Shown in pieces: positions 2,448-56,420 of a stretch of DNA of 64,000 nt. The translations under genes and the position numbers were made by a program. How positions within the stretch are numbered: position 1 is the stretch's first letter; every line of letters starts with the position of its first letter. The notes beneath the pieces were generated by a model. It worked only from the letters and a program-made list of their open reading frames with translations. It had not been told where the DNA came from and did no database searches. Where the stretch lies: assembly GCA_002269645.1 (NCBI GenBank), contig NIVC01002325.1:62001-126000 (forward strand). The letters are read 5' to 3'. This DNA is from Macrostomum lignano (taxonomy: Eukaryota).

Positions 2448-2867
2448 ATGAACTCAGAGCTGCACTTTCGCCTCCTGCGGCTTCTGTCCATTTTGTCAGC
2501 GGTCTGCTTCGTGTTGTGGGCGGCCTTCTTTGTTGGCTACTTGGCCAGCGTCCGGCCGACCCGCAACGGTACGGAAATAATTGTGGGCCCGGAAGTCCCG
2601 TACGAGACCTGCTTCTACAAGCAGCTGGTGGTCAGAGGCCTCACCTGCGTTGGCGTGGCCGCCTCGCTAGTTGGTGCCATCGCCTTCAACTGTGCCCGTT
2701 GCGCGGCGCAACGGCAGGCGGCCGAGACGGCGGCAGGCACTGGCGACCAATTAGCGACTGCTGCGCTCTACCCTCAGCCTGGCCCGCCTCCCCAGGCTGC
2801 GGCGGGCACTTTGACTGCTGAGACCGCATCTCAGGATGGGAGAGCGAATGGGGATGGGAGAGAGTGA
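2448..2867 (+). CDS. Two-TM membrane protein, probably the TM3-TM4 half of an MS4A-like paralog; 5' end uncertain
   Basis: Two hydrophobic helices; loop IVGPEVPYETCFYKQLVVR resembles YVGPEGSVSSPTAFRVLYIR of the 27536 paralog; Cys pair after the last TM and a Pro/Gln tail. Confidence 0.5.
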   Translation: MNSELHFRLLRLLSILSAVCFVLWAAFFVGYLASVRPTRNGTEIIVGPEVPYETCFYKQLVVRGLTCVGVAASLVGAIAFNCARCAAQRQAAETAAGTGDQLATAALYPQPGPPPQAAAGTLTAETASQDGRANGDGRE

Positions 2868-4340
2868 TTGGGGATGGATGAGAGTGATTGGGGATGAGAG
2901 AGGGTCAATGGAGATGGGAGAGAGTGATTGGGGATGGATGAGAGTGATTGGGGATGAGAGAGGGTCAATGGAGATGGGAGAGAGTGATTGGGGATGGGAG
3001 AGAGTGATTGGGATGGGAGAGAGTGATTGGGGATGAGAGAGGGTCAATGGTGATGGGAGAGAGTGAGTGGCGATGGGAGAGAGTGAATAGGGATGAGAGA
3101 GAGAGTGAATGGGGATGGGAGAGAGTGAATGGGGATGGAAGAGAGTGAATGGGGATGGGAGAGGGTGAATGGGGATGGGAGAGAGTGAATGGGGATGGGA
3201 GAGAGTGAATAGGGATGGGGGAGAGTGAATGGGGATGGGAGAGAGTGAATGGGGATGGGAGAGAGTGAATGGGGATGGGAGAGAGTGATTGGGGATGGAA
3301 GAGAGTGAATGGGGATGGAAGAGAGTGAATGGGGATGGAAGAGAGTGAATGGGGATGGGAGAGGGTGATTGGGATGGGAGAGAGTGATTGGGGATGGGAG
3401 AGAGTGATTGGGATGGGAGAGAGTGATTGGGGATGAGAGAGGGTCAATGGTGATGGGAGAGAGTGAGTGGCGATGGGAGAGAGTGATTGGGATGGGAGAG
3501 AGTGATTGGGGATGGAAGAGAGTGAATGGGGATGGAAGAGAGTGAATGGGGATGGGAGAGGGTGAATGGGGATGGGAGAGAGTGAATGGGGATGGGAGAG
3601 AGTGAATGGGGATGGGAGAGGGTGAATGGGTATGGGAGAGAGTGAATAGGGATGGGAGAGTGAATGGGGATGGGAGAGAGTGAATGGGGATGGGAGAGAG
3701 TGAATGGGGATGGGAGAGAGTGAATGGGGATGGGAGAGAGTGAATAGGGATGGGAGAGGGTGAATGGGTATGGGAGAGAGTGAATAGGGATGGGAGAGAG
3801 TGAATGGGATGGGAGAGAGTGATTGGGGATGGAAGAGAGTGAATGGGTATGGGAGAGAGTGAATGGGGATGGGAGAGGGTGAATGGGTATGGGAGAGAGT
3901 GAATAGGGATGGGAGAGAGTGAATGGGGATGGGAGAGAGTGAATGGGGATGGAAGAGAGTGAATGGGGATGGAAGAGAGTGAATGGGGATGGGAGAGAGT
4001 GAATGGGGATGGAAGAGAGTGAATGGGGATGGGAGAGAGTGAATGGGGATGGAAGAGAGTGAATGGGGATGGAAGAGAGTGAATGGGGATGGGAGAGAGT
4101 GAATAGGGATGGGAGAGAGTGAATGGGGATGGAAGAGAGTGAATGGGGATGGGAGAGAGTGAATGGGGATGGAAGAGAGTGAATGGGGATGGAAGAGAGT
4201 GAATAGGGATGGGAGAAAGTGACTAGGGATGGAAGAGAGTGAATAGGGATGGGAGAGAGTGAATAGGGATGGGAGAGAGTGAATAGGGATGGGAGAGAGT
4301 GAATGGGGATGGAAGAGAGTGAATGGGGATGGGAGAGGGT
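2836..4340. repeat. Purine-rich ~20-bp tandem array
   Basis: Unit GGGATGGGAGAGAGTGAATG with variants. Confidence 0.95.
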
Positions 4341-4702
4341 GTTTCCATGGTTGCGTTTGGGACTAAAACATAACTTCAAGTATTTATTTGTTTTTCAACC
4401 GCACTCTGCTTGCTTTTAATTCTAAATCTAGTCTAAATCTAGTATTTCGCTACTCCTAGCTTTCGATTGTCAGCTTCCTTTTTCATTTTCATGTACAGCC
4501 GTTTATGCCATGTTTATAAATTATTTCTGTCGCTCTGTGTGGCAGTCGAACTGTTGTTCACTAAATAAACCGGCCTGTCGCTGGATAATTGCGCCTAGCA
4601 AATAGCATAGTGAATTGTATTCGATTTCAAGTTCTACGGTTTGAAAGAAAATATATTGAAGGTTTAGGGCGAGGGCAGAGCAGGTTGTCATTGTGTCAGA
4701 TT

Positions 4703-5590
4703 GTGTGTCATTGTGTCAGCTCGTGTGTCAGATTGTCTCAGTTCATGTGTCATTGTGTCAGATTGTGTGTCATTGTGTCAGCTCGTGTGTCATTGTGTCA
4801 GTCCGTGTGTCAGATTGTCTCAGCCCATGTATCATTGTGTCAGCTCGTGTGTCAGATTGTCTCAGTTCATGTGTCATTGTGTCAGATTGTCTCAGCCCAT
4901 GTGTCATTTTGTCAGCTCGTGTGTCAGATTGTCTCAGCCCATGTGTCATTTTGTCAGCTCGTGTGTCAGATTGTCTCAGCCCATGTGTCATTTTGTCAGC
5001 TCGTGTGTCAGATTGTCTCAGCCCATGTGTCATTTTGTCAGCTCGTGTGTCAGATTGTCTCAGCCCATTTGTCATTTTATCAGCTCGTGTGTCAGATTGT
5101 CTCAGCCCATGTGTCATTTTGTCAGCTCGTGTGTCAGATTGTCTCAGCCCATGTGTCATTTTGTCAGCTCGTGTGTCAGATTGTCTCAGCCCATTTGTCA
5201 TTTTGTCAGCTCGTGTGTCAGATTGTCTCAGCCCATGTGTCATTGTTTCAGATTGTGTGTCAGATTGTCTCAGCCCTTGTGTCATTGTGTCAGCTCGTGT
5301 GTCAGATTGTCTCAGCCCATGTGTCATTGTGTCAGATTTTGTGTCAGATTGTGTGTCAGATTGTCTCAGCCCATGTGTCATTGTGTCAGCTCGTGTGTCA
5401 GATTGTCTCAGCCCATGTGTCATTTTGTCAGCTCGTGTGTCAGATTGTCTCAGCCCATGTGTCATTTTGTCAGCTCGTGTGTCAGATTGTCTCAGCCCAT
5501 GTGTCATTGTGTCAGATTTTGTGTCAGATTGTGTGTCAGATTGTCTCAGCCCATGTGTCATTGTTTCAGCTGGTGTTTCAGATTGTTTCA
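4703..5590. repeat. 42-bp tandem array with TGTCA sub-repeats
   Basis: Unit GTGTCAGATTGTCTCAGCCCATGTGTCATTTTGTCAGCTCGT. Confidence 0.95.
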
Positions 5591-5829
5591 ATAGCATTTC
5601 CTAGTCACATTATGTCATTCCATGTGCCAGGGTATATGACATCTGTGCGTCATGTTCTGTCAGCTGGCAAGTCAGATGTCAAAAGTCAGTGATAAATTGT
5701 GTCAGCTTATCGATTTCATTCCCAGAATGCAGGATTCGAGATTTGGGTCAGACAGAAATATTTTTGTCGTACTTTGTGTCAGCCCGTGTGTCAGGTCAGT
5801 TTTCCCGCACCAATCTCATGCCCCCGCAG

Positions 5830-7733
5830 GCCAGCCAATGAGCGGCAGTACCTACGCCAGCCGCGTGCCGAAGGCGGTGCTGCGGAGTCACGTGATAATG
5901 GGCATCATGCAGTTGGCGGTTGGCTGCCTGCTCATCGCCCTGACCATCGTAGGCGTGGCCACCAAGCAAACCTACTACCAGTCTGTGGGCAGCGGATTCT
6001 GGGCCGGCCCCTTCGTCGTCGCAGCTGGCATATCCGGCCTTCAAGCCGGCCGCGGCTCTTGCGGCACCCTCTGCTGCGTGGTCACCTGTCTGGTGTTCTC
6101 CATCATTGCCAGCTGCCTGGCCTTCCCTGGCCTCGTCCTCGATGCCATCATGGCCTCAAACAACCTCTACACGTTCAACTCGGCCACCGCCGGCAGCCGC
6201 GGCAGCGAGGTCCTCTTCCGCGTCACCTACGCCACCAATGTGATCTGCGCCCTGCTGTACGCCTTCGAGTTCGTGCTGGCCATCGTGCACTCGGTGTACG
6301 CCTGCCGCGCCTCCTGCTGCTGCGTGCCGGCTTCCCCGCCCATGCAGCCGGGCCACGGCCAGCAGGGCAACCCCTATGTGGTCAGTCAGCCCTTCTGTGC
6401 AATGGGGTGCAATGGGGTGAATGTGCAACACTCCACTTAGCTGTAGGGTCCCCTGTTGTAAAGAGCTGAAGAGTCCTTGCAAACAGCTCACCAGTGACTC
6501 TGGCGACTCAGGGGCGACTCTTGTGACTTTTAACGAGTCAACGGGCTGTAATGCGATGCAGAGGCGACTGTATAATCGTAAAAGAGTTGCGAAAATGTCG
6601 TTTAAGAGTCATTTTGTTAGTGCTCAACTTTCTACTAACTTGAGTAGACTAAAATAGAGTTGTTATAAATGCGAACTGCGATTATAATTCATAGAGTGAC
6701 GCAGATGCGCTTTAGGCGCAACTCAGGAATTTTACAACGACTTTCAAGTACGACTCAAACACGATCCCAGAGTGATTATAGAAGCGCCTCAGAGTTGTTT
6801 CAGAGTCGTAGACAACAAGGCGCCTTAAATTGACTCTTAGGCGACTCTTTCACGACTTTGTGGCGACTTGTACTGTGCACCTCGTCGTTTTAGGGTCGTC
6901 TAGAGACGCTTCTTTTCTATTTTACCTGTACGAGTCTGGAACACTTCTTGACCCAGTTGCCGTTTTCAGCAGGGTCAGCGGGAGGCTTCGCCGCCCATTC
7001 CGCTAAGAACCCCTGGTGACCTCGGACAGCTGATGCTTCGGTGTCGCTCAGGAAAGGCGTCGCTGGCTAAGGCCATGGCCCCATTTCCACAGTCGTTGTC
7101 AATAGTCAGGTCAAGCAGTGGGGGGTATCCAAGCACAGGGAGAGGTGGGCAAACCCCCCCCCCCCGGCTGCCTGACTCAACCACAGTGACCAGCTGGAGC
7201 AGTCATGCCTGCTTGGCTAAGCCTTGGTAGAAAATCCGTATTGAAGAATTGTCTATTCTTTCTCTTCAATATTGAGAATGCGGAGCACTTCATCTGTGAA
7301 TGCCCCGCCTATACTCGAGCAGGCTCGCCTACCACGGTGAAGTGGACTTTTGTGCGCGGTCACAGTACCTTGGGGCTCGTCCAGAAGAGTTTACCTGTAT
7401 CTTTCCGCGCGATGCTTGCCCATGGGGCCAGCCTCCCAAGGCAATTTGTGTCAGCTCATGTGTCAGATCGGCAAGCATATCGATTTGAGCCCGTGACCTC
7501 AGCTGAGATGCCGCCCCCTTACTTTCCCTGTCGCGCAGGTGGTCAACGTGGCCTCTCAGCAGCAGCAGCAGCAGCCGCACCCGCCCTACCACCCGTATCC
7601 TTCGCACCAGCCCGCCTTCAACCCAGGCTTACTGCCGCCGTCTCAGCCGGAGCAGCCGCCCTCCTACGACCAGGCCATGCAGGAAGCCGCAGCTGCCGGG
7701 CCTGCGGCTGCCAGCGCCCCGCCCAAGTTCTGA
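5830..7733 (+). CDS. MS4A/CD20-like tetraspan protein; exons 5830-6380 and 7539-7733, ATG at 5838 or in an upstream exon
   Basis: LRSHVIMGIMQLAVG, GFWAGPFVVAAG and [15 protein letters not shown] motifs; phase-0 GTCAGT...CGCAG intron joins a Q/P tail with PPSY. Confidence 0.85.
6465..6935 (+). repeat. Dispersed GAGTC/GACTC-rich repeat, copy 1
   Basis: Colinear similarity to 49667-50042 (GAGTCCTTGC.AACAGC, AGAGTTGCGAAAA, TAGACTAAA, TTGACTCTTAGGCGACT, TTACCTGT). Confidence 0.75.
7262..7430 (+). mobile_element. Non-LTR retrotransposon ORF2 C-terminal remnant
   Basis: ENAEHFICECPAY followed, after a frameshift, by RSQYLG, typical of the LINE C-terminal zinc knuckle. Confidence 0.55.
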
Positions 7734-7899
7734 GCCGAAAGTTCTGGCAAACCGGCAGTGCGCTGAAATCGCGTTATAAACTGACCTCTGCACCCGAAAC
7801 TGGACAACCGCTTCCTTGTTGTGTTTTTGTTTACTTAGGCGCTTCTTTTGGCACCGCACTGATGCACCTGGGTTGTTCTCGCTCGGGTCAATCTCATTG

Positions 7900-9170
7900 G
7901 AGTGTGTCAGGCTCGCTGTGGTGAGTACTTGTGTCAGTGTCACTAGAGTGTGTCAGACTCGCTGTGGTGAGTACTTGTGTCAGTGTCACTAGAGTGTGTC
8001 AGACTCGCTGTGGTCAGTACTTGTGTCAGTGTCACTAGAGTGTGTCAGACTCGCTGTGGTCAGTACTTGTGTCAGTGTCACTAAAGTGTGTCACACTCGC
8101 TGTGGTCAGTACTTGTGTCAGTGTCACTGGAGTGTGTCAGACTCGCCTGTGGTCAGTGTCAGTGGAGTGTGTCAGACTCGCTGTGGTCAGTGTCAGTGGA
8201 GTGTGTCAGACTCGCCTGTGGTCAGTGTCAGTGGAGTGTGTCAGACTCGCTGTGGTCAGTGTCAGTGGAGTGTGTTAGACTCGCCTGTGGTCAGTGTCAC
8301 TGGAGTGTGCCAGACTCGCCTGTGGTCAGTGTCAGTGGAGTGTGTGAGACTCGCTGTGGTCAGTGTCACTGGAGTGTGTCAGACTCGCTGTGGTGAGTAC
8401 TTGTGTCAGTGCTACTGGAGTGTGTCAGACTCACTGTGGTCAGTGTCAGTGGAGTGTGTGAGACTCGCTGTGGTCAGTGTCACTGGAGTGTGTCAGACTC
8501 GCTGTGGTGAGTACTTGTGTCAGTGCTACTGGAGTGTGTCAGACTCACTGTGGTCAGTGTCAGTGGAGTGTCAGACTCGCCTGTGGTCAGTGTCACTGGA
8601 GTGTGTCAGACTCACTGTGGTCAGTGTCAGTGGAGTGTGTCAGACTCGCTGTGGTCAGTGTCAGTGGAGTGTGTCAGACTCGCTGTGGTCAGTGTCAGTG
8701 GAGTGTGTCAGACTCGCTGTGGTGAGTACTTGTGTCAGTGTCAGTGGAGTGTGTCAGACTCGCTGTGGTCAGTGTCACTGGAGTGTGTCAGACTCACTGT
8801 GGTCAGTGTCAGTGGAGTGTGTCAGACTCGCTGTGGTCAGTGTCAGTGGAGTGTGTCAGACTCGCTGTGGTCAGTGTCAGTGGAGTGTGTCAGACTCGCT
8901 GTGGTGAGTACTTGTGTCAGTGTCAGTGGAGTGTGTCAGACTCGCTGTGGTCAGTGTCACTGGAGTGTGTCAGACTCGCTGTGGTCAGTGTCACTGGAGT
9001 GTGTCAGACTCGCTGTGGTCAGTGTCAGTGGAGTGTGTCAGACTCGCTGTGGTCAGTGTCAGTGGAGTTAGATAGACTCGCCTGTGGTCAGTGTCAGTGG
9101 AGTGTGTCAGACTCGCTGTGGTCAGTGTCAGTGGAGTTAGATAGACTCGCCTGTGGTCAGTGTCAGTGTT
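7900..9170. repeat. ~34-bp tandem array with 35- and 46-bp variants
   Basis: Unit AGTGGAGTGTGTCAGACTCGCTGTGGTCAGTGTC. Confidence 0.95.
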
Positions 9171-10395: not shown

Positions 10396-10446
10396 AGTAT
10401 CAGATTCGCATCTGTTGAAGCGATGAATTTTGATGCCATTCCTGCC

Positions 10447-11039
10447 ATGGCTGCAGAGCAACCTGAGCACAGCACGGACTCTGAGCTCACCGCCTACGCC
10501 AGGCTGGTGCCCAGCTGGGTGCTCAGAGGTCACGTGATCATGGGCGGCATCCAGCTGTGCATCGGGCTGCTGCTGCTGCTCCTGGCTGTCTATGGCCTTC
10601 TCGCCGCCGACCAGTCCGCCAGCACCAACACGTTCTCGGATTCTGGTCCGCCTTCTTCTTCATCCCCGCCGGTGCCACGGGCCTGGCCGGAGGCAGGGGC
10701 CGCGCCAACACGCTGTGCTGCATCGTGTCCTGTCTGGTGCTCAGCATCCTGGCCGCCTGTGTTGGATTCTTAGCGATTTTGGCCAACGCCCTGATGGCTT
10801 CGGGATCGGCGTATCGCTGTGACCGCAATATCTACTGGTGTGTGCGCTTCATGCCGTCCGACATCCTCTGGTTCCTGTTGTTTTTTACTGAGCTGGTGGT
10901 GGCCATCGTCCATGCCGCCTTCTCCTGCCGCGCCTGCTGCTGCGTCGACAAGAACCGTCAAGACCGTGAGGTGCTGGCGATCAGCTTTGCTGAAGGCGAG
11001 CAGCCGCCTGTTTATTCGCCGCCGCAGGCTGAAGTGTAA
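10447..11039 (+). CDS. MS4A/CD20-like protein with one -1 frameshift at ~10638 (assembly error or pseudogene)
   Basis: MAAEQ...VLRGHVIMGGIQLCIG continues as GFWSAFFFIPAG...AIVHAAFSCRACCC...PPVY if one G is restored (TCG GGA TTC, as in the 13229 paralog). Confidence 0.8.
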
Positions 11040-13228: not shown

Positions 13229-14553
13229 ATGTCTCAGAGCTCCGACTTCACCAGCTCCGTCAGGCAGCTGCCGCACAGGCTGCTCAGAGCTCACGTGATC
13301 ATGGGTGCCATCCAGATCACCGTGGGCTGCCTGGTGCTCTACTCAAACATCTACTCACTGCTTGCCGGGGATTTCACTGCCAGCAGCAGAAGGACCTTCT
13401 CGGGATTCTGGACTTTCCCTGTCTTCATCGCCGCCGGGGCCACCGGCCTGGCTGGCGGCCGCGGCCGCTCCAACACGCGCTGCTGTCTCATTGGCTGCCT
13501 GGTGCTCAGCAGCCTGGCCGCCATCGTGAGCGCTGGCGCCATCGCGGTGAACATCTTCATGTGCTTCCATCAGTTTGGCTTCGCCAGCTACGCAGATATT
13601 CTGTGGCTGCTGACCTACCTGCTTGAGACCGTGGTGGCCATCGTGCAGGTGAGCCCTTCTCTCTCGCCTGATCCCTGTGTCTGAGGCCCATCTGTCACAA
13701 GACTGTGTGAGTGACAGTTCTGAGAAGACATGTGGCAGTTAGTCTATATTCTCGTACAGGCCCGTGGCAGTCTGGTTCTTACAGGCTCTTACAGACTCTT
13801 ACAGACTTACAGACTCTTACAGGCTCTTACAGACTTACAGGCTCTTACAGGCTCTTACAGACTCTTACAGACTCTTACAGACTTACAGACCCTTACAGAA
13901 TCTTACAGACTCTTACAGACTCTTACATACTTACAGACTCTTACAGACTCTTACAGACTCTTACAGACTTACAGACACTCTTACAGACTTACAGACTCTT
14001 ACAGGCTCTAACAGACTTACAGACTCTTACAGACTTACAGACTCTTACCGACTTACAGACTCTTACAGGCTCTTACAGACTTACAGACTCTTACAGACTC
14101 TTACAGACTTACAGACTCTTACAGACTCTTACAGACTTACAGACTCTTACAGACTCTTACAGACTCTTACAGGCTCTTACAGACTTACAGACCCTTACAG
14201 ACTCTTACAGACTTACAGACTCTTACAGACTTACAGACCCTTACAGACCCTTACAGACTCTTACAGACTCTTACAGACTCTTACAGACTCCTCCAGACTC
14301 TTCCAGAATCTTACAGACACCTACAGTCAGTCCATTGCAATCACGTGACAGTCATCGTGCTGGTCATCGCCAGCCTTTTCTCATTTTCAAATCCAAAATT
14401 TCATCTCAGGTCGTCTTCGCCAGCCGCGCCGTCTGCTGCCGCTTCCCGCCTGCCGACAGTAGCGACGGTCGCCGCGGCCCCCTGGCGGTGCAGCTGGGCG
14501 ACTCGGGAGACGGCGCTGCCTACGCCACCAAAACTGGCAACAGCTACATGTAG
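13229..14553 (+). CDS. MS4A/CD20-like protein, 187 aa; exons 13229-13648 and 14410-14553
   Basis: LLRAHVIMGAIQITVG and GFWTFPVFIAAG; CAG|GTGAG donor and TCTCAG acceptor join in phase 0 to give AIVQVVFASRAVCC. Confidence 0.85.
13780..14310. repeat. Intronic 8/10-bp CTTACAGACT array
   Basis: Direct inspection. Confidence 0.95.
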
Positions 14554-16474: not shown

Positions 16475-16942
16475 ATGAAGGCGGCCGCAGCGGGCAGTGA
16501 CGTCATTCTCAGCAGCGAAGAACCCCCCGTCAGTCGGGCGCCCGGTGCAGGTCACGTGATTGCTGGGGTCTCCCAGATCAGCCTTGGCTGCCAGGTCGCC
16601 TTCGTGACTGCCGTCTGCCTGCTGGCCGGCATTCGCCCGGGCTTCGGAATCTGGACCGGCCCGCTCTTCATCACTGCTGGGGCGGTGGGGCTGCGGGCAG
16701 CAGGCGGCGGGCGCTGCGCCACTCGATTCGCCTGCGCCGCGCTTAGCGCCGGCGCTCTCTGCGCCTCCGCCTGCGCCATCGCCGCGAGCTCTGCGGCCAC
16801 CGCGGCTGGCTGCGGGCGCCAACCTGCCGATGTCCTCCTGCTGCTGCTGCACCTCGCCGAGCTGCCGGCTGCTGGCCTGCAGGCCGCGTCGGCCCTGAGC
16901 AGCTCGGAGCAGAGAGCGGAGCTCCGGCTTGGACTGCCCTGA
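16475..16942 (+). CDS. Divergent, Ala-rich MS4A-like protein, single exon
   Basis: GHVIAGVSQISLG, GIWTGPLFITAG and ADVLLLLLHLAE align with family TM1, TM2 and TM4; no Cys cluster or PY tail. Confidence 0.65.
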   Translation: MKAAAAGSDVILSSEEPPVSRAPGAGHVIAGVSQISLGCQVAFVTAVCLLAGIRPGFGIWTGPLFITAGAVGLRAAGGGRCATRFACAALSAGALCASACAIAASSAATAAGCGRQPADVLLLLLHLAELPAAGLQAASALSSSEQRAELRLGLP

Positions 16943-22578: not shown

Positions 22579-22756
22579 TGATCCCCACAAAGCTGCAGAA
22601 TGTTGCAAAGAGTATCAATTTTTTCGTATAGAAAATCATTGAAATTATGCATTTCTTAGTTTTTTAGTTTGTTTTTTATTTTCCGTTGCATTTAATTCTT
22701 CTCTCATTATTTCTGCTTGCCATTTTTTTAGATGACGGAAGCGACTCCAAAAGGCG

Positions 22757-25960: not shown

Positions 25961-26057
25961 CACATGATCAAGCATTCAAGGCATGCAGCTCTGAATGTTG
26001 ATGCGGCTCTGAAGTGTACAGTTTCCCCGTTGCCCATCGGCTTTATGCCCGGCAGCC

Positions 26058-40789: not shown

Positions 40790-41885
40790 GCTACCCAGTA
40801 GTCTCAGTGCTGTTCTGTGAGCCCCAGTAGTCTCAGTGCTGTCCTGTGAGCCCCAGTAGTCTCAGTGCTGTCCTGTGAGCCCCAGTAGTCTCAGTGCTGT
40901 CCTGTGAGCCCCAGTAGTCTCAGTGCTGTCCTGTGAGCCCCAGTAGTCTCAGTGCTGTCCTGTGAGCCCCAGTAGTCTCAGTGCTGTCCTGTGAGCCCCA
41001 GTAGTCTCAGTGCTGTCCTGTGGGCCCCAGTAGTCTCAGTGCTGTCCTGTGGGCCCCAGTAGTCTCAGTGCTGTCCTGTGAGCCCCAGTAGTCTCAGTGC
41101 TGTCCTGTGAGCCCCAGTAGTCTCAGTGCTGTCCTGTGAGCCCCAGTAGTCTCAGTGCTGTCCTGTGAGCCCCAGTAGTCTCAGTGCTGTCCTTTGAGCC
41201 CCAGTAGTCTCAGTGCTGTCCTGTGAGTCCCAGTAGTCTCAGTGCTGTCCTGTGAGCCCCAGTAGTCTCAGTGCTGTCCTGTGAGCCCCAGTAGTCTCAG
41301 TGCTGTCCTGTGAGCCTTAGCAGTCTCAGTGCTATCCTGTGAGCCCCAGTAGTCTCAGTGCTGTCCTGTGAGCCCCAGTAGTCTCAGTGCTGTCCTGTGA
41401 GCCCCAGTAGTCTCAGTGCTGTCCTGTGGGCCCCAGTAGTCTCAGTGCTGTCCTGTGGGCCCCAGTAGTCTCAGTGCTGTCTTGTGGGCCCCAGCAGTCT
41501 CAGTGCTGTCCTGTGAGCTCCAGTAGTCTCAGTGCTGTCCTGTGGGCCCCAGTAGTCTCAGTGCTGTCCTGTGGGCCCCAGTAGTCTCAGTGCTGTCCTG
41601 TGGGCCCCAGTAGTCTCAGTGCTGTCCTGTGGGCCCCAGTAGTCTCAGTGCTGTCCTGTGAGCCCCAGTAGTCTCAGTGCTGTCCTGTGAGCCCCAGTAG
41701 TCTCAGTGCTGTCCTGTGGGCCCCAGTAGTCTCAGTGCTGTCCTGTGGGCCCCAGTAGTCTCAGTGCTGTCCTGTGAGCCCCAGTAGTCTCAGTGCTGTC
41801 CTGTGGGCCCCAGTAGTCTCAGTGCTGTCCTGTGAGCCCCAGTAGTCTCAGTGCTGTCCTGTGGGCCCCAGTAGTCTCAGTGCTG
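40790..41885. repeat. 29-bp tandem array, about 37 copies
   Basis: Unit GTCTCAGTGCTGTCCTGTG(A/G)GCCCCAGTA. Confidence 0.97.
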
Positions 41886-42024: not shown

Positions 42025-43017
42025 ATGCAGCAGCCACAGCAACAGCCTGGCCCCGGGGTGTCACCAGTGCCGCAGGTGGTGGCGCCACCCTCTGCCGCGG
42101 CCCCTGGCAGCTACGCGAGCCGCGTGCCGCCTTCGGTACTGCGGGCCCACCGCATCATGGGCTTCCTGCAGCTGCTGACTGGCGCTCTCGTCATCATCAT
42201 CAACATTGCGGGCCTGGCCGTCGGCTCTGGCGAGAAAATCATCACTCGGTACGGCCTGTCGACTCAGTTCAGCCTGGTCGGCGGCGGCGTCTGGTCCGGC
42301 CCGTTCTTCATCGCTGCCGGCATCTCCGGGCTCTCGGCAGGTCGTCCCGGTGGCGGCTGCACCCTGGGCTGCGTGGTCACCTGCCTGGTGTTCTCCATCA
42401 TCGCCTCGGTCTTGGCCTTCTCCGCCATGGTCACCGAGGCCATTGTGGCTGCTGAGAACCGCAGAATGTACGAGTACTCCAAGTCGTACTCAAGTAGCAG
42501 CTCTGAAGACGTCTTTCGGGCCGTGTACGGTACCGGCATCGCCTGTGTGCTGCTGTGCGCCTTCGAGTTCGTGCTGGCCATCGTGCACTCCGCTTTCGCC
42601 TGCCGCGCCTCCTGCTGCTGCGTGCCATCAGCTGTGAGCAACCAGCAGCAGCCGCACCAGCAGGTTTTCATGACCGGCCAGCGCGCCTACGTCACGGAGC
42701 ATGCAGGGCCCTACCCTGGCCAGGTCGTAGTCTACCCTGGCCAGCAGGTCATCTTTGCTCCTCAGTCAGGCCACCCACCGCCACCCGGGTATCCTGTCCA
42801 GCAGACCGGGTATCCGGGTCCGCAGGCTGGGTATCCGGGTCCGCAGGCCGGGTATACGGGTCAGCAGGCTGGGTATCCGGGTCAGCAGGCCGGGTATCCG
42901 GGTCCGCAGGCCGGGTATCCGGGTCCGCAGGCCGGGTATCCGGGTCCGCAGGCCGGCAGCAGCACAGCTCCGCCGCCCTATGAATCCAGCATTGAAGGTC
43001 ACGCGGTGAAATTTTGA
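42025..43017 (+). CDS. MS4A/CD20-like protein, intact, single exon, 8-heptad tail
   Basis: [53 protein letters not shown], (GYPGPQA)n, PPPY. Confidence 0.92.
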
Positions 43018-44211: not shown

Positions 44212-45213
44212 ATGCAGCAGCCACATCAGCTTCAACAGCCGGGCACGCGGGTGGCGACCCCCGGCAACTACCTGGACCGCGTGTCGGCTCGGGTGCTGCG
44301 CGGCCTCCGCATCATGGGCATCATTCAGGTGCTGGTCGGTATCTTCGCCATGGGCGTCAGCATCGCCGGTCTGGTCATCGGCACCGACAAGAAGATGGTG
44401 GACAAAGACAGCGGCGCCGAGAGCGAGCTGAGCCAGCTTGGCAGCGGCGTCAGGGCCGGCCCGTTCTTCATAGCCGCCGGCATCTCCGGCATCATCGCCT
44501 CCCGCCCAGGCTGCTGCTGCCCCCTGGGCTGCGTGGTCACCTGCCTCGTGCTGTCCATCCTCGCCGCCGTCTCCGCCTTCTCTGCCATCATCACGGAGGC
44601 GTTTGCGGTCGCGCAGAACCGCACCCTGTATGAGAATGCTGGCAGCGGCAGCGACTTCACCGCCTACCACGTCGTCTACAGCACCGGCATCGTGTGCGCG
44701 CTGCTCTGCGGCATCGAGCTGGCGGTGGCCAGCGTGCACTCCGCCTTCGCCTGCTGCGCCTCCTGCTGCTGTGTGCCATCGGCTGTGAGCAGCGAGACAC
44801 AGCAGCGGCAGCATCAGCAGCATGTGGTCACCAACCAGCCTGGAAGTTCCTCTGGCCCGCAGGCCGGGTATTCAGGTCCACAGGCCGGGTATCCGGGTCA
44901 ACAGGCTGGATATCCAGGTCCACAGACCGGTTATCAGGGTCCGCAGGCCGGGTATCCGGGTACTCAGACTGGGTATCCGGGTACTCAGACTGGATATCCG
45001 GGTCCGCAGACCGGGTATCCGGGTCCTCAGGCTGGGTATCCGGGTCCTCAGACTGGGTATCCGGGTCCTCAGGCTGGATATCCGGGTCCTCAGGCTGGAT
45101 ATCCGGGTCCTCAGGGCGGATATCCGGGTCCGCAGGGCAGCTCCACGGGCGGCCGGATCCCGGATGCGCCGCCATCGTACGAGGCCAGCATGGCAGACGC
45201 TGTTCGGAAGTGA
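44212..45213 (+). CDS. MS4A/CD20-like protein, 333 aa, intact, single exon, 13-heptad tail
   Basis: [40 protein letters not shown], (GYPGPQ[A/T/G])n, PPSY. Confidence 0.92.
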
Positions 45214-45809
45214 AGCTCTGAAGCGCCATCCTGTTTTGGACTTGTAGCTGTGATGTGAAACTTTTTCTACACGTTGTTTTACCTATCGCCAGTTTTTCTG
45301 CTGCAGGTCGGGCATGCATCTTGTGGTCTTAGTGGCAGCATTTTTTGCCCAACTTGCACACAAAGATGTTTTGTGTTCCGGCTTTAGTCCATGCACAAAT
45401 TTGCCACCAAATTTTTACATATTTTTTTCTGCTCCTTCGATCCGATATGCCCGGAAACTGCGGACTTTTTTATTGCAAAAATTTATTAAATAATTATTGA
45501 ATCCCGACTTTACATTCGCTCTGCCCATGCACTTTTATTCCTCTTGCCTTTGGCAAGCCTATAATTAATCTGTATATTTATCAGACACTGTTTCAGCAGA
45601 GCTTCTCAGCCTTGTTTGAGCTTTGATTAGCAAACTATAACATTCGTCTGGCCTCGTAACTGAATGTGTAACCGCGAAATTGAAAATCTCAGGCTCTCTT
45701 AACTGTTTGTGATGACTCGCCAGCTTAAAAGTTCAATAACTCAGAAATATAGATTTTTCTATGGAAGATTCTAAACAGTTTGGTTCAGAGGACTTTTTTA
45801 TTCTGAACC

Positions 45810-46735
45810 TGCAATAGCCTACTATCAGTAGCCCAATAGCTAGCACAGCTGCAATAGCCTACTATCAGTAGCCCAATAGCTAGCACAGCTGAAATAGCCT
45901 ACTATCAGTAGCCCAATAGCTAGCACAGCTGCAATAGCATACTATCAGTAGCCCAATAGCTAGCACAGCTGCAATAGCATACTATCAGTAGCCCAATAGC
46001 TAGCACAGCTGCAATAGCATACTATCAGTAGCCCAATAGCTAGCACAGCTGCAATAGCCTACTATCAGTAGCCCAATAGCTAGCACAGCTGAAATAGCCT
46101 ACTATCAGTAGCCCAATAGCTAGCACAGCTGCAATAGCCTACTATCAGTAGCCCAATAGCTAGCACAGCTGCAATAGCATACTATCAGTAGCCCAATAGC
46201 TAGCACAGCTGCAATAGCATACTATCAGTAGCCCAATAGCTAGCACAGCTGCAATAGCATACTATCAGTAGCCCCAAAGCTAGCACAGCTGCAATAGCAT
46301 ACTATCAGTAGCCCCATAGCTAGCACAGCTGCAATAGCATACTATCAGTAGCCCAATAGCTAGCACAGCTGCAATAGCATACTATCAGTAGCCCAATAGC
46401 TAGCACAGCTGCAATAGCATACTATCAGTAGCCCCATAGCTAGCACAGCTGCAATAGCATACGCTCGTACTATCAGTAGCCCCATAGCTAGCACAGCTGC
46501 AATAGCATACTATCAGTAGCCCCATAGCTAGCACAGCTGCAATAGCATACTATCAGTAGCCCAATAGCTAGCACAGCTGCAATAGCATACTATCAGTAGC
46601 CCAATAGCTAGCACAGCTGCAATAGCATACTATCAGTAGCCCAATAGCTAGCACAGCTGCAATAGCATACTATCAGTAGCCCAATAGCTAGCACAGCTGC
46701 AATAGCATACTATCAGTAACCCTATAGCTAGCACG
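45810..46735. repeat. 40-bp tandem array
   Basis: Unit GCAATAGCATACTATCAGTAGCCCAATAGCTAGCACAGCT. Confidence 0.97.
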
Positions 46736-46811: not shown

Positions 46812-47176
46812 GAGCAGCCTGCGCCGCGGGTTGTGATGGTGGCGCCCTCAGACACGGAGGCGTCCGGCAACAATAGGAGCATCATCACATGGGCATCATC
46901 CAGTTGGTGACCGGCGCCCTCACCATCATCTTCAGCGAGGTGGGCCTGAGCATCGGCACCGTCAAGAAGATGAAGCTCAAATACGCCGGAGGCGAGTTCA
47001 GCCTGTCCGGCGGCGGAATCTGGGCCGGTCCGTTCTTCATCGGCGCCAGCATCTCCTGATTCATGGCTTCAAGGCAGGCCTGCCGCTGCACCCTGGGCTG
47101 CGTGGTCACCTGCCTGGGGCTGTCCATTGTTGCTGCCTGTCTGACCGCCTTCTCCACCATGGCCTCTGAGGGGTGA
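46812..47176 (+). pseudogene. MS4A-like pseudogene with TM1-TM3 only
   Basis: MGIIQLVTG...GIWAGPFFIGASIS, in-frame TGA at 47057 where paralogs have Gly, [10 protein letters not shown], truncated at TGA 47174; 5' frameshift. Confidence 0.85.
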
Positions 47177-48268: not shown

Positions 48269-49143
48269 ATGCTCCGCCCCAACTCCCGCAGCAGCAGCCA
48301 CAGAGTCAGGCGGTGCCTCTCGTGACGCCGCAGGTGGTGACTGGGGCACCGGCTGCCCCGAGCGGCCCCACAAACTATGCCAGCCGACTGCCGCCCTGGG
48401 TGCTGCGGGGCCACCGCATCATGGGCTTACTGCAGCTGCTGACAGGCGCTCTGCTCTTAGTCATCGGCATTTTTGGCCTGGCCGACAGCTTCAGCATTGT
48501 GATGAAGGGGCGCGATGAGTACCTGTATTACCACTTTCGGGTTTCCTCCGCCGGCCTCTGGACTGGCCCGTTTGTCATGGCCGCTGGCATCTCCGGAATG
48601 TCGGCTGCCCGCAATGGCTGCGGCTGCGCCCTGGGCTGCGTGATCACCTGCCTGGTGCTCTCCATCATCGCCTCTGTTGCGGCTTTCTTCGCCATGGTCT
48701 CTAGCTCTGTCACTTCGGTCTTCAATCAGCACCTGATGGATCAGTACACCGCGACCAGCGGCTCCCGCGATGACGTCGATGTCGCCTTCCGCAAGGCCTA
48801 CGCCATCAGCGTCGTTTGCGCGCTTCTGTGCGCCTTCGACTTCGTGCTGGCCATCGTGCACTCCGCCTTCGCCTGCCGCGCTTCCTGCTGCTGCGTGCCG
48901 CCCGTTGCAAGCTCCCAGCAGCCGCAGCAGGTCATCTATTTGGCTCAGCCCGGATATCCGGGTCAGCAGGCCGGGTATCCGGGTCAGCAGGCCGGGTATC
49001 CGGGTCAGCAGGCCGGGTATCCGGGTCAGCAGGCCGGGTATCCGGGTCAGCAGGCCGGCTCAAGCGCCTATCAATTCGCGGATTGTCCTCCACCGTACGA
49101 ACAGAGCGCTGGTGAGGCTGAAAAGGTCCGGCCGACTCCATAA
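48269..49143 (+). CDS. MS4A/CD20-like protein with 5-heptad tail; start uncertain (ATG 48269 needs one extra base, or an upstream exon splices to CCGCAG)
   Basis: [53 protein letters not shown], (GYPGQQA)x5, PPPY. Confidence 0.88.
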
Positions 49144-50289: not shown

Positions 50290-51477
50290 ATGCCACCGCA
50301 GGGAGGTTCCGTCATGCTTGAGGAGCCTCAGTTCCCCGTCAGGCAGCGCAGCGCGCACAAGAATTTCGGCACCCTGGCGGTGCTCTGCGGCTGCTCGCTG
50401 GCCCTGCTGGAGGTCCTCGCCATCGTCATGCGCTCCGGCTACGCCATCCGCGGCACCGGACTTTGGTGCGGCGCCGTCCTGCTGCTGTCTGGCGGCCTCG
50501 CCGTCTCCGCCGCCACCGCCCGCCACCGGCTGCGCCGGCGCTGCCTGGCGGCCGGACTGGTCGCCGCTGCGGCCCTCCTGGTGACGACGGCTGCGGCCAC
50601 CGCTGAGGCGGCCACTCTGGCCGAAAATCGGCGCCTTTACGAGCGAACTCGCATGCGGATGCGGGAGCAGGTACGACTCGTTTTGTGCCTGTGACCTGCC
50701 GTTTTAACCTGATGTGATCTGCCGCTTGAGCCAGGTGTGATCTGCTTGAGCCAGGTGTGATATGCTTGAGCCAGGTGGGATCTGCTTGAGCCAGGTGTGA
50801 TATGCTTGAGCCAGGTGTGATATGCTTGAGCAGGTGTGATCTGCTGCTTGAGCAGGTGTGATCTGCTTGAGCAGGTGTGATCTGCTTGAGCAGGTGTGAT
50901 CTGCTTGAGCAGGTGTGATCTGCTTGAGCAGGTGTGATCTGCTTGAGCAGGTGTGATCTGCTTGAGCAGGTGTGATCTACTTGAGTCAGGTGTTACATAC
51001 GGCTTAATCCAGATGTGATCTGTCACATGAACCAGGTGTGACCTGCCGCTTGAACCTGGTGTAATCTGCCACGTCTCTTAAGTCGTCACTTAAGAGTTGT
51101 TTGGGTTTGGGTTTTGGCTGTTTGGGTCAAGTGTGATCTGCAGCTTGAAACAAATGTGACCTACCAATCTGGCATGTCTGCAGGCCTATCTGGCGGTGTT
51201 CTACCTGGGCGTGGCCAAGACGGTCGTGGAGTGCCTGTCGCTGCTGCTGTCCACTGCGCAGCTCGTCTGCCTGCTCGGCTTCTACCGGCGGCTCCTCTCT
51301 GAACGGCGGGCTGGCGGCCTCAGCCTGGCGGCCGTCACGGAGGCCTCGGCCGAGCCGCTGTCGCTGCGAATCCCGCAGCCCCGACCGCTGGAGCCGCCGC
51401 CGTACTCGCCTGTTGCCGACCCGCTGGAGCCGCCGCCGCCGCCGCCGCCCTACTCCGAAGTGGCTGATGAAAAATGA
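50290..51477 (+). CDS. Divergent MS4A-like protein; exons 50290-50670 and 51184-51477
   Basis: GLWCGAVLLLSG and AENRRLYE (compare AENRRMYE in the 42025 gene); CAG|GTACG...CTGCAG phase-0 intron; two PPPY motifs. Confidence 0.8.
50725..51060. repeat. Intronic 19/20-bp array
   Basis: Unit GTGTGATCTGCTTGAGC(C)AG. Confidence 0.9.
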
Positions 51478-52372: not shown

Positions 52373-52399
52373 ACTTATCTACCTGACCATTGCTGCCAG

Positions 52400-54316
52400 A
52401 TGACAACTGAAGGAGACGCGGAGCAGCAGCAGGACGCAGAGGGCAGTGATGACGAGGAGATGCTGGACGACGAGGCAGAAGAGGAGCCGCAGGAGCCGGC
52501 GCGGCCCTACCTGCCGAACAGCGGCGACCCGCAGCCCGGGCCGGACGAGGAGCTGGTGATGGACCGCACGGCCTACAAGCTGTACTACCAGATGAGCGTG
52601 GAGTGGCCCTGCCTGAGCATCGATGTGCTGCCCGACCCGGAGAACGCAGCCAGTGGCGCCGCCTTCGACTTTGACGACGCCGAGCGGTCGCTGAGCTGCT
52701 TCCTGGTGTGCGGCACGCAGGCCCCCGAGGCCGGCCGCAACGCCGTCTGTGTGATGCGCGCCGCCGGCCTGTTCCCCATGCGGCGCCGGCGCGCCGGCGA
52801 GGACGGCGAGGACGGCGAGGACTCCGACTCAGAAGACGACTCGGACGAGGAGGAGGCGGACCGACGCGGCGACGTGTCCGTGGCGCAGCTCCGCCACAAC
52901 CAGACGATCAACCGGATTCGAGCCTCGGACGTTACGGGCCGGCCGCTGGCGGCCACCTGGTCTGAGGCGGGCGCTGTGTACATCTTCGACCTGACCGAGG
53001 CCCTGACCGCCGTGGCCGACCACCACCTGCTGACCGAGTTCACCCGCCGGCCAGAGTCGCCCGCGCCGCTGTTCGCCTTCCGCGGCCACTCGGCCGAGGG
53101 CTTCGGGCTGGACTGGAGCCGCCTGGTGCCCGGCCGCCTGGCCAGCGGCGACTGCGCCGGCGCCATCCACGTCTGGCAGCCGGCCGAGGGCGGCGCCGGC
53201 TGGCGGGTGGACCCGCGGCCGCTGGCCGGCCACAGCGGCTCGGTGGAGGACCTGCAGTGGTCGCCCACCGAGGCCAGCGTGCTGGCCGGCTGCTCCGTCG
53301 ACCGCAGCCTCCGCGTGTTCGACGTGCGCGCCAAGCCCGACAAGGCCTGCATGCTGACCCGGCCGGACTGCCACGGCAGCGACGTGAACGTCATCGCCTG
53401 GAACCGGCTGGAGTCCCAGTACATCGTCAGCGGCGGCGACGACTGCGCTCTGCGCGTCTGGGACCTGCGCCGCTTCGCCAGCGAGGCGCCGCCTGCCTGC
53501 GAACTCAGGTGGGTGCAGCTTGGCTGCTGGAGTGCCCGAATCAGGCAGTGCCTCCCCAACATCAGGCAGTGCCTCCCCAACATCAGGCAGTGCCTCCCTA
53601 ACATCAGGCAGTGCCTCCCCAATATCAGGTAGTGCCTCCCCAATATCAGGTAGTGCCTCCCCAACATCAAGTTGTGCCTCCCCAACATCAGGTAGTGCCT
53701 CCCCAACATCAGGTAGTGCCTCCCCAACATCAGGTAGTGCCTCCCCAACATCAGGCAGTGCCTCCCCAACATCAGGTAGTGCCTCCCCAACATCAGGTAG
53801 TGCCTCCCCAACATCAGGTAGTGCCTCCCCAACATCAGGTAGTGCCTCCCCAGCATCAGGTAGTGCCTCCCCAACATCAGGTAGTGCCTCCCCAACATCA
53901 GGTAGTGCCTCCCCAACATCAGGTAGTGCCTCCCCAGCATCAGGTAGTGCCTCCCCAATGTCAGGTAGTGCCTCCCCAATATCGGGTTGTGCCTTCCCAA
54001 TATCAGGTAATGCTGCTTATCCCTGGCTACCGACATGTACCGCCCCACCCGCAGCTACCACAAGGGCCCGATCACCTCGGTGCAGTGGCACCCCACGGAC
54101 AGCTCGGTGTTCCTGGCCACCTCCGAGGACAACCAGCTGACGCTGTGGGACCTCGCCTGCGAAGGCGTCTCGACAGCCGGCCTGCCGCCGCAGCTGCTGT
54201 TCATCCATATGGGCCAGCAGGAGATGAAGGAGGGCCACTGGCACCCGCAGCTTCCCGGCTTGGTGCTCAGCACCGCGCTGGACGGCCTCAACATCTTCAA
54301 GACCATCAGCATTTAA
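52400..54316 (+). CDS. GRWD1: Glutamate-rich WD repeat protein 1 (yeast RRB1 ortholog), 456 aa; exons 52400-53508 and 54055-54316
   Basis: ELVMDRTAYKLY...WPCLSID, acidic tract, GHSAEGFGLDWS, GHSGSVEDLQWSPTE, DVNVIAWN, C-terminal PPQLLFIHMGQ...HWHPQLPG...FKTISI; phase-2 GT-AG intron restores ELSYHKGP. Confidence 0.95.
53540..54008. repeat. Intronic 21-bp array
   Basis: Unit CCCCAACATCAGGTAGTGCCT. Confidence 0.95.
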
Positions 54317-54587
54317 CTGGCCTTAGTGGGGTGTTCTTATCAGTGCCTGCCCACCTGGAGTAAGCTGTGAATACACTTGACCGCCTCTGGACTGACGCCC
54401 AGCATTTTTCAACTGATTGGAGAATTTCTATTGAAGTTTGCCGCTGCATTTACGGATCTTTGTTAATTTGGCTTTAGGTGGCGATTTCTCTAGTCAGCCG
54501 GGCTCACAGAACTGCCTGGGCCACAAAGATGCTGCTGCTCAATGGTGATGGTCACGGCTCGTGAAATGAGCAAACGACTCATGAATT

Positions 54588-54875
54588 AAGCATCATTCAC
54601 AAATTGAGCATCATTCACAAATTGAGCATCATTCACAAATTGAGCATCATTCACAAACTGAGCTTCATTCACAAATTGAGCATCATTCACAAACTGAGCA
54701 TAATTCACAAACTGAGCATCATTCACAAACTGAGCATCATTCACAAACTGAGCATCATTCACAAACTGAGCTTCATTCACAAATTGAGCATCATTCACAA
54801 ACTGAGCATCTTTCACAAACTGAGAATCATTCACAAATTGAGCACCATTCACAAATTGAGCATCATTCACAAATT
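54588..54875. repeat. 18-bp tandem array
   Basis: Unit AAA(C/T)TGAGCATCATTCAC. Confidence 0.95.
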
Positions 54876-55570
54876 TGGAATAATTCACAAAAAAATTGAT
54901 TGTGGCTCACAACTGCCACCCTGCACGCACAAGCCGACGGTTTTTCGCACTTCATACTGCGAGTGACGCACAATTTACGGCACACCGAAGTGGTTGCGCA
55001 ACCAGTGGGTTGAGTTGGGAGTGAGAAGTGGTCTCTTAACTTATCGCACGATATGCGCGGGTGGCAATTGTGACTGTTGCTAAGCGTAGACCCGTCAAAT
55101 GATAGAGACTAACAATAAATAGACTTACAGAATGCAGAGCAGCGATCGCTAAGCGAGCAGGTGCAACTACACTAGAGTGACCTGCTGTTGAAGTTTCTCG
55201 TAAAAGTTCTTCAATTTGTGATATCAGCGCGATTGCGAGAGTTAAAGGTGTTGGTGGCAATAAGAGTGAAGCCATTCGTTGTTTCTGCTCGGAGTTGCGC
55301 ATTTACAGAAAATATCGAATCAAACAGCAGTTTTAGCGAAATGTTTTTGCAGCATCGATCGAGTCAGCTTGCAATTAAAACGAGGTCGAACACTCGACAC
55401 GCGGGGCCGAAAGCCCGCTATTGTATTTCCGTGCCACTGATTAAAACTTAAAACCAAATTAAAACACAAACTGGCTGTGGCTCCCAGGGGGACTGGCAGC
55501 AAGTGCGTCACGGCTAAATAAGTCTCTTTAAAAATAAAAAAATTGCTGTCAGAATGGCAGATGGTCCGCG

Positions 55571-56420
55571 TCACGGCAGAGCCTGTTTCACCTGGGGGGC
55601 TCCGGAGACGGCCGCCGCATCCGGCTCTTCGTAGCCCGGCGGCTGCTGCGCATAAGAATGCGGCAGCACCTGCTGGAAGCTCGGCAGCTGCTGCTGGAAG
55701 CTCGGGTTGAAGGCCGGCTGAGGCTCGAAGTCGGAGGCGGTCTGCAGGAACACGATTTCGTGCTGCTGCTGCTGCCCGTCTGGGGACACGATGGTGACGA
55801 TCTGAGGGCCCTGCGGCTGCTGCTCGCTGCTGCTGGCGGCTGCGGCGGATGGCACGCAGCAGCAGGAGGCGCGGCAGGCGAAGGCGCTGTGCACGATGGC
55901 CAGGAGGAACTCCGCGGCGAACAGCAGGCAGCAGAGGATGCCCATGGCGTGCGACACCTTGAAGTCGCGCTCGTAGCGGCAGCGGTTCGGCCTGGCCTGG
56001 AAAATCTCCCTGTTGGCTGACGTAACGACGGCCTCCTGAATGAGGGCCGAGGCGCTGAACACGGAGGCCAGGATGCTGAACACCAGGCAGGTGACCACGC
56101 AGCCCATGGTGCAGCGCCGCTTGCTCTTGCCAGCCACCAGGCCGGAGATGCCCGCCGCGATGAAAAACGGCGCTGACCAGACGCCGTTGGCGGTGACTTG
56201 CACTGCGGCGCCAACTCCCGAGACGGCGCCCGCGATGCTGAAAACGATGGCGAGCAACCCGACGCTGAGCTGCAGGGCGCCGAGGACCACGTGGGCGCGG
56301 AGCACCCTGGCGGGCACCCGGCTGGCGTAGGTTGCGGGCTTCTCCAGCTTGGCGGTCAGAGTTATCGTTGCTGGGATGTTGGGGCAGGACGGCCAGGTGG
56401 GCAGCAGTGACGTGTGCCAT
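55571..56420 (-). CDS. MS4A/CD20-like protein in inverted orientation; 5' end unresolved (ATG 56420 is out of frame; possible acceptor CCCAG)
   Basis: [71 protein letters not shown]. Confidence 0.88.

Follow-up and report, generated by a model that had tools for sequence, protein, structure and literature searches.

We analysed a 64,000-nucleotide stretch of the genome of the free-living marine flatworm Macrostomum lignano (assembly GCA_002269645.1, contig NIVC01002325.1, positions 62,001 to 126,000; hereafter the window, whose own numbering is used below unless stated otherwise). The best overall explanation of its content, which we hold to be probable, is a lineage-specific array of 15 old, tandemly arranged paralogs that belong to an invertebrate branch of the CD20-like tetraspan superfamily.

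Extent of the array

A family hidden Markov model (HMM), based on seven well-preserved copies, was applied to the six-frame translation of the window. It revealed 15 family loci (designated c05 to c55) that extend from ~5.8 to 56.3 kb; their E-values range between 1e-77 and ~0.1, and their relatedness far exceeds chance. The same set of loci was returned by tblastn with 11 open reading frames (ORFs). Ten loci are full-length, one (c10) is a single G short of it and four are fragments or pseudogenes (c23, c27, c28 and c46). Well-preserved copies share 38-59% amino-acid identity; c19, the most divergent copy, is 28% identical to c42. Two further hydrophobic ORFs, at 2448-2867 and 30724-31098, were considered as family members and rejected (hhalign probabilities of 0.4% and 0.6%, respectively); the sequence-only reading mentioned below had probably included both in its count. 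The window contains no N and its guanine-cytosine (GC) content varies from 31 to 66% along its length; no tRNA or Rfam feature was found in it. A 20.6-kb part of the 183,586-bp contig is 100% identical to positions 16052-36651 of the window.

An earlier sequence-only reading of the same DNA had counted 17-18 related loci in 54 kb, from 2.4 to 56.4 kb, of which only the 15 listed here, between 5.8 and 56.3 kb, are supported. Its estimate that roughly a dozen of them are full-length or one base short comes near our tally of ten plus one. The three shared motifs that it quoted are all found in the copies. Its description of a tandem birth-and-death array in an invertebrate also holds for Macrostomum lignano, since intact genes, fragments and pseudogenes stand side by side.

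Assignment to the CD20-like superfamily

That the copies belong to the CD20-like superfamily is, in our view, very likely. The Pfam family PF04103 (CD20) is the best or only listed match for eight of the 11 copies matched and comes second or third for c10, c42 and c48, with scores over the matched copies of 10.6-26.4 bits (E down to 8e-6). A profile made of ten copies was searched exhaustively against 1.84 billion representative proteins and retrieved 614 of them at E<=1e-3, including 71 with E<=1e-10; PF04103 is in turn matched at E<=1e-3 by 128 of the 147 best relatives (best E 1e-58). Word-indexed protein searches, with a single copy or with a 30-sequence profile, found almost nothing beyond the window. 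The relatives include proteins of the annelid Owenia, the nemertean Lineus, the echinoderms Anneissia and Holothuria, the hemichordate Ptychodera and the tunicate Ciona, and several of them carry MS4A-like names at NCBI. Against all PDB sequences, the ten-copy profile recovered FcεRIβ (MS4A2) with an E-value of 6.5e-6 and an alignment spanning the four transmembrane segments (TM1-TM4).

The predicted fold agrees with this assignment. An AlphaFold2 model of c42, computed from a 30-sequence alignment, reached a predicted local distance difference test (pLDDT) value of 88.8 and a predicted template modelling (pTM) score of 0.85, with four long helices at residues 8-40, 59-77, 86-124 and 130-170. 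When this model was compared with the PDB by Foldseek, FcεRIβ chains occupied ranks 1-3 (TM-scores of 0.61-0.71), and the MARVEL protein synaptogyrin scored 0.44-0.47. Based on the profile and fold results together, homology of the array to the CD20-like superfamily is distant but genuine.

Membership of two other tetraspan families is not supported. For tetraspanins (PF00335), only c48 gave a weak match (E 0.13) and the second predicted ectoloop (~28 residues) lacks a CCG motif; weak tetraspanin matches occur in six of the 147 relatives. For the LAPTM/Mtp family (PF03821), no match was obtained for any copy at E<=1 and none was seen among the 147 relatives, and the PY tail is the only feature in common.

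Conserved and variable regions

Both termini of the copies and their short TM2-TM3 loop are predicted to face the cytosol; basic residues concentrate in the N-juxtamembrane motif, in the TM2-TM3 loop and after TM4. Within the array, identity is highest in the post-TM4 cysteine box CRASCCC (73-93%) and in the N-juxtamembrane motif YASRVPxxVLRxH (56-63%), spans 36-68% in the TM helices and drops to 14-18% in predicted ectoloop 2 and 5-7% in predicted ectoloop 1. Both ectoloops are short (~28 and ~18 residues, respectively) and variable in length.

An alignment with 24 relatives from other phyla showed a common plan: a glutamine in TM1, glycine, tryptophan and small residues in TM2, a serine in TM3, a glutamate in TM4, a cysteine cluster right after TM4 and a tail rich in proline, glutamine and tyrosine. 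As this architecture is common to many invertebrate CD20-like proteins, it is not new to the cluster. The tails of eight out of 14 window loci carry a PPxY motif. Among 139 non-Macrostomum relatives, 56 have the same motif within their 60 C-terminal residues, compared with 8.7 expected (maximum 18) in shuffled tails.

Duplicated segments, selection and expression evidence

Parts of the array recur elsewhere in the assembly. On NIVC01002325.1 itself, two inverted partial duplicates flank the window on both sides: L006 (17953-38549 of the contig record) matches the window from 5 to 21 kb at 92-95% identity and L003 (156629-177618 of the contig record) matches it from 32 to 52 kb at 94-99%. A third version, L004, is found on the 643-kb contig NIVC01000140.1. 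Gene order is kept across these segments, and the state of individual copies varies between them. The M. lignano assembly is redundant and the sequenced line is a hidden polyploid (PMC5730564; PMC10468722). Three origins come into consideration for the duplicates: genuine segmental duplication, homeologs of the hidden polyploid and a mis-join of haplotypes into a palindrome.

Selection was estimated as the ratio of non-synonymous to synonymous substitution rates (dN/dS) between window copies and these 92-99% identical segments. Paralogs share only 38-59% protein identity, at which synonymous sites are saturated, and comparisons between them were therefore not used. Most genes display ratios of 0.14-0.35; when changes are pooled (28 synonymous and 22 non-synonymous), ω is 0.28, which departs from neutrality with a binomial P of 8e-6. 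These values show that the copies are under purifying selection, and the genes look functional. The GenBank genes of GCA_002269645.1 derive from a genome-guided transcriptome (PMC5730564). Seven window loci (c26, c27, c42, c44, c46, c48 and c50) have such models, and so do the sister-segment copies of c10, c13 and c19. Expression data listed by gene ID were not found in the paper texts and two supplement sets.

Individual loci

All loci lie on the plus strand, with the exception of c55. Introns are absent from seven copies; a single one follows TM4 in c13 and c19 and precedes it in c50. At the 5′ end of the array, c05 (5838-6437) is an intact single-exon CD20-like gene of 199 residues (HMM E 1.4e-74; Pfam CD20 18.9 bits) with a CRASCCC box and no PPxY; its dN/dS is 0.16-0.20 versus L004 and L006, and an exact look-up of its model found no annotated gene. 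The next locus, c10 (~10453-11036), is full-length but frameshifted and is detected as two HMM pieces in different frames. A GGG is reduced to GG near 10638, three bases are deleted in the cysteine box and the tail contains PPVY. On both L004 and L006, c10 is intact as a 198-residue protein (PAA89752 and PAA58835). The frameshift is private to the window, and the lost G may be either a true mutation or a homopolymer error.

The two-exon gene c13 (13229-13648 and 14410-14550; HMM E 1.2e-25) has an intron of the form GTGAGC...CAG that houses a 10-bp minisatellite (13777-14326), and its splice is identical in the database models P0008 and P0009. Its dN/dS is 0.14-0.33, and its orthologue on L004 (~12.8-13.9 kb) has a stop. 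The second two-exon gene of this type, c19 (19616-20056 and 20215-20430; HMM E 2.5e-10; Pfam CD20 16.1 bits), ends with PPAY and PPTY motifs and its splice agrees with the annotated protein P0012. Both introns sit at the identical position, after the glutamine that ends TM4, with GTGAGC donors and CAG acceptors. Between these two genes, c16 (16475-16939; HMM E 9.5e-6) is a divergent full-length ORF of 155 residues that lacks the cysteine box and the tail and whose status is uncertain; dN/dS is 0.15 from few changes, and its L006 orthologue (~16.0-16.2 kb) has a 7-bp deletion.

The remnant c23 (23471-24090) has kept TM1 (HMM E 0.12), has lost the core and continues with an out-of-frame tail, recognized by tblastn, that consists of a GYPGQQT repeat and a PPPY end. 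The next locus, c26 (26058-26648), is an intact single-exon gene of 197 residues (HMM E 7.4e-63) annotated in GenBank (P0006, window 26052-26651, 88052-88651 of the contig), and it has the best Pfam CD20 score of any single copy (26.4 bits, E 8e-6). The divergent c27 (27590-28212) is detected with an HMM E of 0.045-0.13 and an hhalign E of 2e-4 (probability 47%). Its TM1 (27590-27643) is in another frame than the ORF 27667-28212, which covers TM2-TM4 and is annotated as a 181-residue gene. The C-terminal half gene c28 (28406-28684; HMM pieces with E 8.5e-6 and 8.5e-8) comprises part of TM2, TM3, TM4 and CRASCCC, with neither TM1 nor an ATG.

In the second half of the window, c42 (42025-43014; HMM E 6.6e-77) and c44 (44212-45210; HMM E 1.1e-68; Pfam CD20 22.4 bits) are intact single-exon genes of 330 and 333 residues, both with GenBank gene calls (P0003 for c44). 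The tail of c42 consists of a GYPGPQA repeat and PPPY, that of c44 of a long GYPGPQ repeat and PPSY; for c44, dN/dS is 0.17 and a weak precomputed CD20 match is on record. The pseudogene c46 (46880-47170; HMM pieces with E 2.3e-10 and 1.7e-9) has in-frame stops and is truncated after TM3. Its stop is also present in L003 and its dN/dS is 0.63. In c48 (48295-49140; HMM E 1.8e-73; gene call P0002), a full-length ORF of 282 residues is annotated as 5′-partial, with five GYPGQQA units and PPPY in its tail and a dN/dS of 0.35. The divergent two-exon member c50 (~50293-50670 and 51184-51474; HMM E 8.9e-7; Pfam CD20 16.9 bits) corresponds to a 223-residue gene call, and its tail harbours two PPPY motifs. 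Finally, c55 (55574-56332, minus strand; HMM E 9.6e-76) is a full-length ORF beyond an unrelated WD40 gene.

A 21-bp coding minisatellite (GYPGQQA/T; 5 to ~16 units) underlies the repetitive tails of c23, c42, c44 and c48 and is located at 23682-24021, 42.75-42.98 kb, 44.85-45.17 kb and 48.97-49.07 kb, respectively. As the number of units varies among paralogs, tail length evolves by slippage.

History of the array

In a neighbor-joining (NJ) tree based on a 167-column core, 11 Macrostomum copies cluster together in two subclades. One contains c10, c13, c16, c19 and c26; the other contains c05, c42, c44, c48, c55 and the dispersed singleton Mlig018631 (P0004), which is the nearest sequence to c55. 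This singleton and a second one, Mlig020832, each lie alone among unrelated genes. The profile matches M. lignano proteins at E<=1e-42 and the top-ranking protein of any other phylum at 7e-22, and well-preserved copies are 24-33% identical to proteins of other phyla, compared with 38-59% within the array. Monophyly of the array is suggested by the tree, and the other comparisons fit an old expansion in the Macrostomum lineage by tandem duplication with losses, which looks lineage-specific.

Several observations weigh against this picture of a lineage-specific CD20-like array or against the functions that may be read from it. On the phylogenetic side, c50 and the singleton Mlig020832 fall outside the NJ clade, the bootstrap of the clade of all copies is 0.13 and support is generally 0.13-0.40, except for the pair of c55 and Mlig018631 (0.99). 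The independent expansion put forward by the sequence-only reading is thus favoured by the grouping of 11 copies and the large E-value gap to other phyla, and is weakened by the low bootstrap values. On the side of family assignment, the same reading had proposed HMMER against Pfam CD20 as a check: the family is the top match for most copies, but none of them reaches the gathering score of PF04103 (best 26.4 versus 27.9 bits). CD20 itself was not recovered at E<=10 when the sequence profile was run against all PDB sequences and is a weak fold match (6y90_A, TM-score 0.46-0.47). Moreover, the Foldseek E-values are modest (4e-3), as expected of a plain four-helix bundle. As for the features discussed below, PPxY is absent from c05, c13, c16, c26, c27 and c28, so it cannot be essential in every member, and the variability of the ectoloops is weak evidence for specificity because in most membrane proteins the loops are under less constraint than any other part.

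The last of these observations is the lack of an in-frame genomic ATG in c48 and c55. Where the ancestral ATG stood, both now have a leucine codon (window 48295 for c48; CTG at 56350 on the minus strand for c55), but the long ORF is intact and an in-frame AG acceptor is found just upstream. The spliced leader (SL) of M. lignano ends in ATG (PMC8629364), and the start codon of these two copies may be SL-donated. For c42, c44 and c50, the annotated 5′-partial start follows a genomic ATG, with no AG; SL trans-splicing as an explanation for partial starts of coding sequences is unproven.

Strict membership of the vertebrate MS4A family is a separate question, and here the label of CD20/MS4A-like four-TM genes used by the sequence-only reading is only partly borne out. 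The CD20-like superfamily is supported by profile and fold; strict MS4A genes they are not, given a flatworm host and genes that are mostly intronless. Vertebrate MS4A genes are multi-exon, with TM segments on separate exons. Finally, the sequence-only reading knew of no description of such a cluster, and our literature search found no published one.

Possible functions

We tentatively propose that the copies act as palmitoylated tetraspan adaptors with ubiquitin-dependent trafficking, a model that we regard as possible rather than likely. Each protein would be a small, probably oligomeric membrane scaffold with cytosolic N- and C-termini. Its juxtamembrane CRASCCC cluster would be S-palmitoylated, a poly-cysteine juxtamembrane box being the usual context of this modification. 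Ubiquitin ligases of the Nedd4 type would be recruited through their WW domains, for which the C-terminal PPxY is the canonical ligand, and would thereby control how the protein and its membrane partners are trafficked and turned over. The two unconserved ectoloops may give each paralog its own partner or ligand preference. There are precedents for the components of the model, as the PY motifs of LAPTM proteins bind Nedd4 and direct lysosomal sorting and vertebrate MS4A proteins chaperone other receptors. The Mtp/LAPTM family also belongs to the same Pfam clan as the CD20-like family (CL0347, TSPAN_4TM-like; PMC13539156). Overall, PPxY and the cysteine box speak for a role in trafficking or as an adaptor no less than for a receptor.

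A receptor role was the expectation of the sequence-only reading, and the array has features that one would look for in a diversified surface repertoire (chemosensory, immune or involved in self-recognition) with paralog-specific ligands bound through the ectoloops: tandem birth-and-death with intact copies, fragments and pseudogenes, nearly unconserved and length-variable ectoloops next to conserved TM helices and cytosolic motifs, purifying selection and transcript-derived gene models. In addition, mouse MS4A proteins sense ligands in necklace olfactory neurons. We nevertheless consider such a repertoire unlikely. The ectoloops are only ~18 and ~28 residues long, the paralogs are too old, at 38-59% identity, for dN/dS to detect positive selection on them, and a like architecture in dispersed single genes (Mlig018631 and Mlig020832) and in many phyla suggests a housekeeping membrane role. 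The more specific version, in which an independent ligand- or self/non-self-sensing tetraspan repertoire would combine paralog-specific ectoloops with a common PPxY/palmitoyl signalling or trafficking module, seems to us rather improbable. Oligomeric cation channels or channel subunits could be envisaged from the membership of the CD20-like superfamily, as a channel role has been proposed for TMEM176B, MS4A12 and formerly CD20, and from the near-invariant polar TM residues across the wider family (glutamine in TM1, glutamate in TM4 and tryptophan in TM2). Yet the model is a compact four-helix bundle without a pore of its own and, to our knowledge, the solved structures of CD20 and FcεRIβ contain no permeation path, which makes this role quite improbable.

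Two more readings concern the nature of the genes rather than their ligands. MARVEL-domain vesicle-trafficking proteins are suggested by the automatic naming of UniProt ('MARVEL domain-containing protein' is the UniRef name of Mlig018631, Mlig005671 and one Ciona relative) and share with the array four TMs and cytosolic termini. However, no Pfam match to MARVEL (PF01284) at E<=1 exists in 20 window ORFs, none at E<=1e-3 is found among the 147 relatives, whereas 128 match CD20, and the fold of synaptogyrin fits less well than that of FcεRIβ; the proposal is largely refuted and barely credible. The array could also be a mostly decaying or artefactual set, in which the redundancy of an assembly from a hidden polyploid would have raised the copy number and the genes would be largely non-functional. 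The inverted partial duplicates on the contig and the homeolog on another contig are in line with this suspicion, as are the four fragment or pseudogene loci, the frameshift of c10 and the missing genomic ATG of c48 and c55. Still, assembly redundancy would produce near-identical copies, and the 38-59% identity of well-preserved ones shows that window copies are true paralogs. Gene order kept across the duplicated segments, the pooled dN/dS and the transcript-derived gene models speak against it as well, and we therefore give it very little weight.

Neighbouring sequence

Between c50 and c55, an unrelated GRWD1/RBBP4-like WD40 gene (52397-54316, plus strand) is supported by Pfam matches to CAF1C_H4-bd and WD40 and by a 457-residue gene call; its intron is largely a 21-bp minisatellite (53540-54013). 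On the other side of c55, the adjoining ORF 56749-57345 (plus strand) has a signal-like N-terminus and a weak PAN/apple match (PF14295, E 1.3e-4). Upstream of the array, the ORF 2448-2867 (plus strand) encodes 139 residues with two predicted TMs and is ~98% identical on the homeologous contig, compared with 88-91% for its flanks. This difference suggests that a small, conserved gene for a membrane protein lies here, with no relation to the array; in GenBank, another frame is annotated at this site (2402-2821).

Nearly all intergenic spacers contain minisatellites, each of them a different one, with periods of 19-45 bp and up to 96 units (for example at 778-1573, 2840-4341, 8117-9168, 21694-22585, 31937-33850, 40794-41885 and 45809-46734). 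Three spacer ORFs (7205-7924, 36198-36919 and 61020-61712) display the retroelement-like peptide motifs HFICECPAY, SDSQAAL and HYLTECP. Pfam gave no match on these ORFs (7.2-7.9, 36.2-36.9 and 61.0-61.7 kb), and their origin from transposable elements is only an impression. The gap in the array between 31 and 41 kb is occupied by retroelement-like ORF(s) and an AT-rich block at 38-40 kb (GC 0.31).

Comparison with known systems

The closest counterparts of the array are CD20-like proteins of other invertebrates, such as Ciona intestinalis XP_018668375 ('MS4A8'), Ptychodera flava XP_070538158 ('MS4A4D-like'), Lineus longissimus XP_064644474, Owenia fusiformis CAH1786189 and those of Anneissia and Holothuria. 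They share with the window copies the motifs LGxxQIxxG (TM1), GIWxG..FIxxG (TM2), MVLSIxxA (TM3) and ExxxAIxxS (TM4), the cysteine cluster after TM4 and the Pro/Gln/Tyr-rich tail that often ends with PPxY. Profile E-values to these proteins are 1e-22 to 1e-9, yet they are only 24-33% identical to the window copies. The multi-domain models seen for several of the relatives suggest that tandem arrays exist elsewhere too. What sets the Macrostomum copies apart is their own YASRVPxxVLRxH motif, the fixed CRASCCC box and an array of 15 loci.

Zuccolo et al. (2010) found true MS4A genes only in jawed vertebrates and dismissed invertebrate similarities as possibly convergent (PMC2826416). Our results bear on this view of no MS4A-like genes in invertebrates, as profile and fold support a true, distant homology. 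CD20-like tetraspans outside vertebrates do form sizeable, transcribed and selectively maintained tandem arrays, and YASRVPxxVLRxH, CRASCCC and the PPxY tail are cytosolic features of the invertebrate branch for which vertebrate MS4A proteins are not known. Lineage-specific expansions of gene families are common, and in that respect the array is real but fairly ordinary, not a categorically new system. If a receptor repertoire were true, the array would represent the invertebrate equivalent of the mammalian MS4A chemosensor/immune cluster, and evolution would have turned the CD20-like fold to diversified surface recognition on more than one occasion. Besides, M. lignano is transparent and tractable by transgenesis, which makes the function of an MS4A-like array testable in vivo.

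With respect to vertebrate MS4A proteins (FcεRIβ, PDB 8y81_B and 8k7t_B; CD20, 6y90_A), the likeness lies in the tetraspan four-helix fold with cytosolic termini, in a tandem birth-and-death cluster and in variable ectoloops. The differences are an identity of 13-19%, the absence of an immunoreceptor tyrosine-based activation motif (ITAM) and the presence of PPxY and the cysteine box in the Macrostomum copies, and genes with no or one intron. LAPTM4A/4B/5 are likewise small multi-TM proteins of the tetraspan-like clan CL0347 with C-terminal PY motifs and offer a functional analogy for the PPxY tails, whereas their TM motifs are unlike those of the Macrostomum copies. Finally, MARVEL proteins (synaptogyrin, MAL and CMTM) resemble the array in their four TMs and cytosolic termini, but there is no Pfam match and the fold agrees less well.

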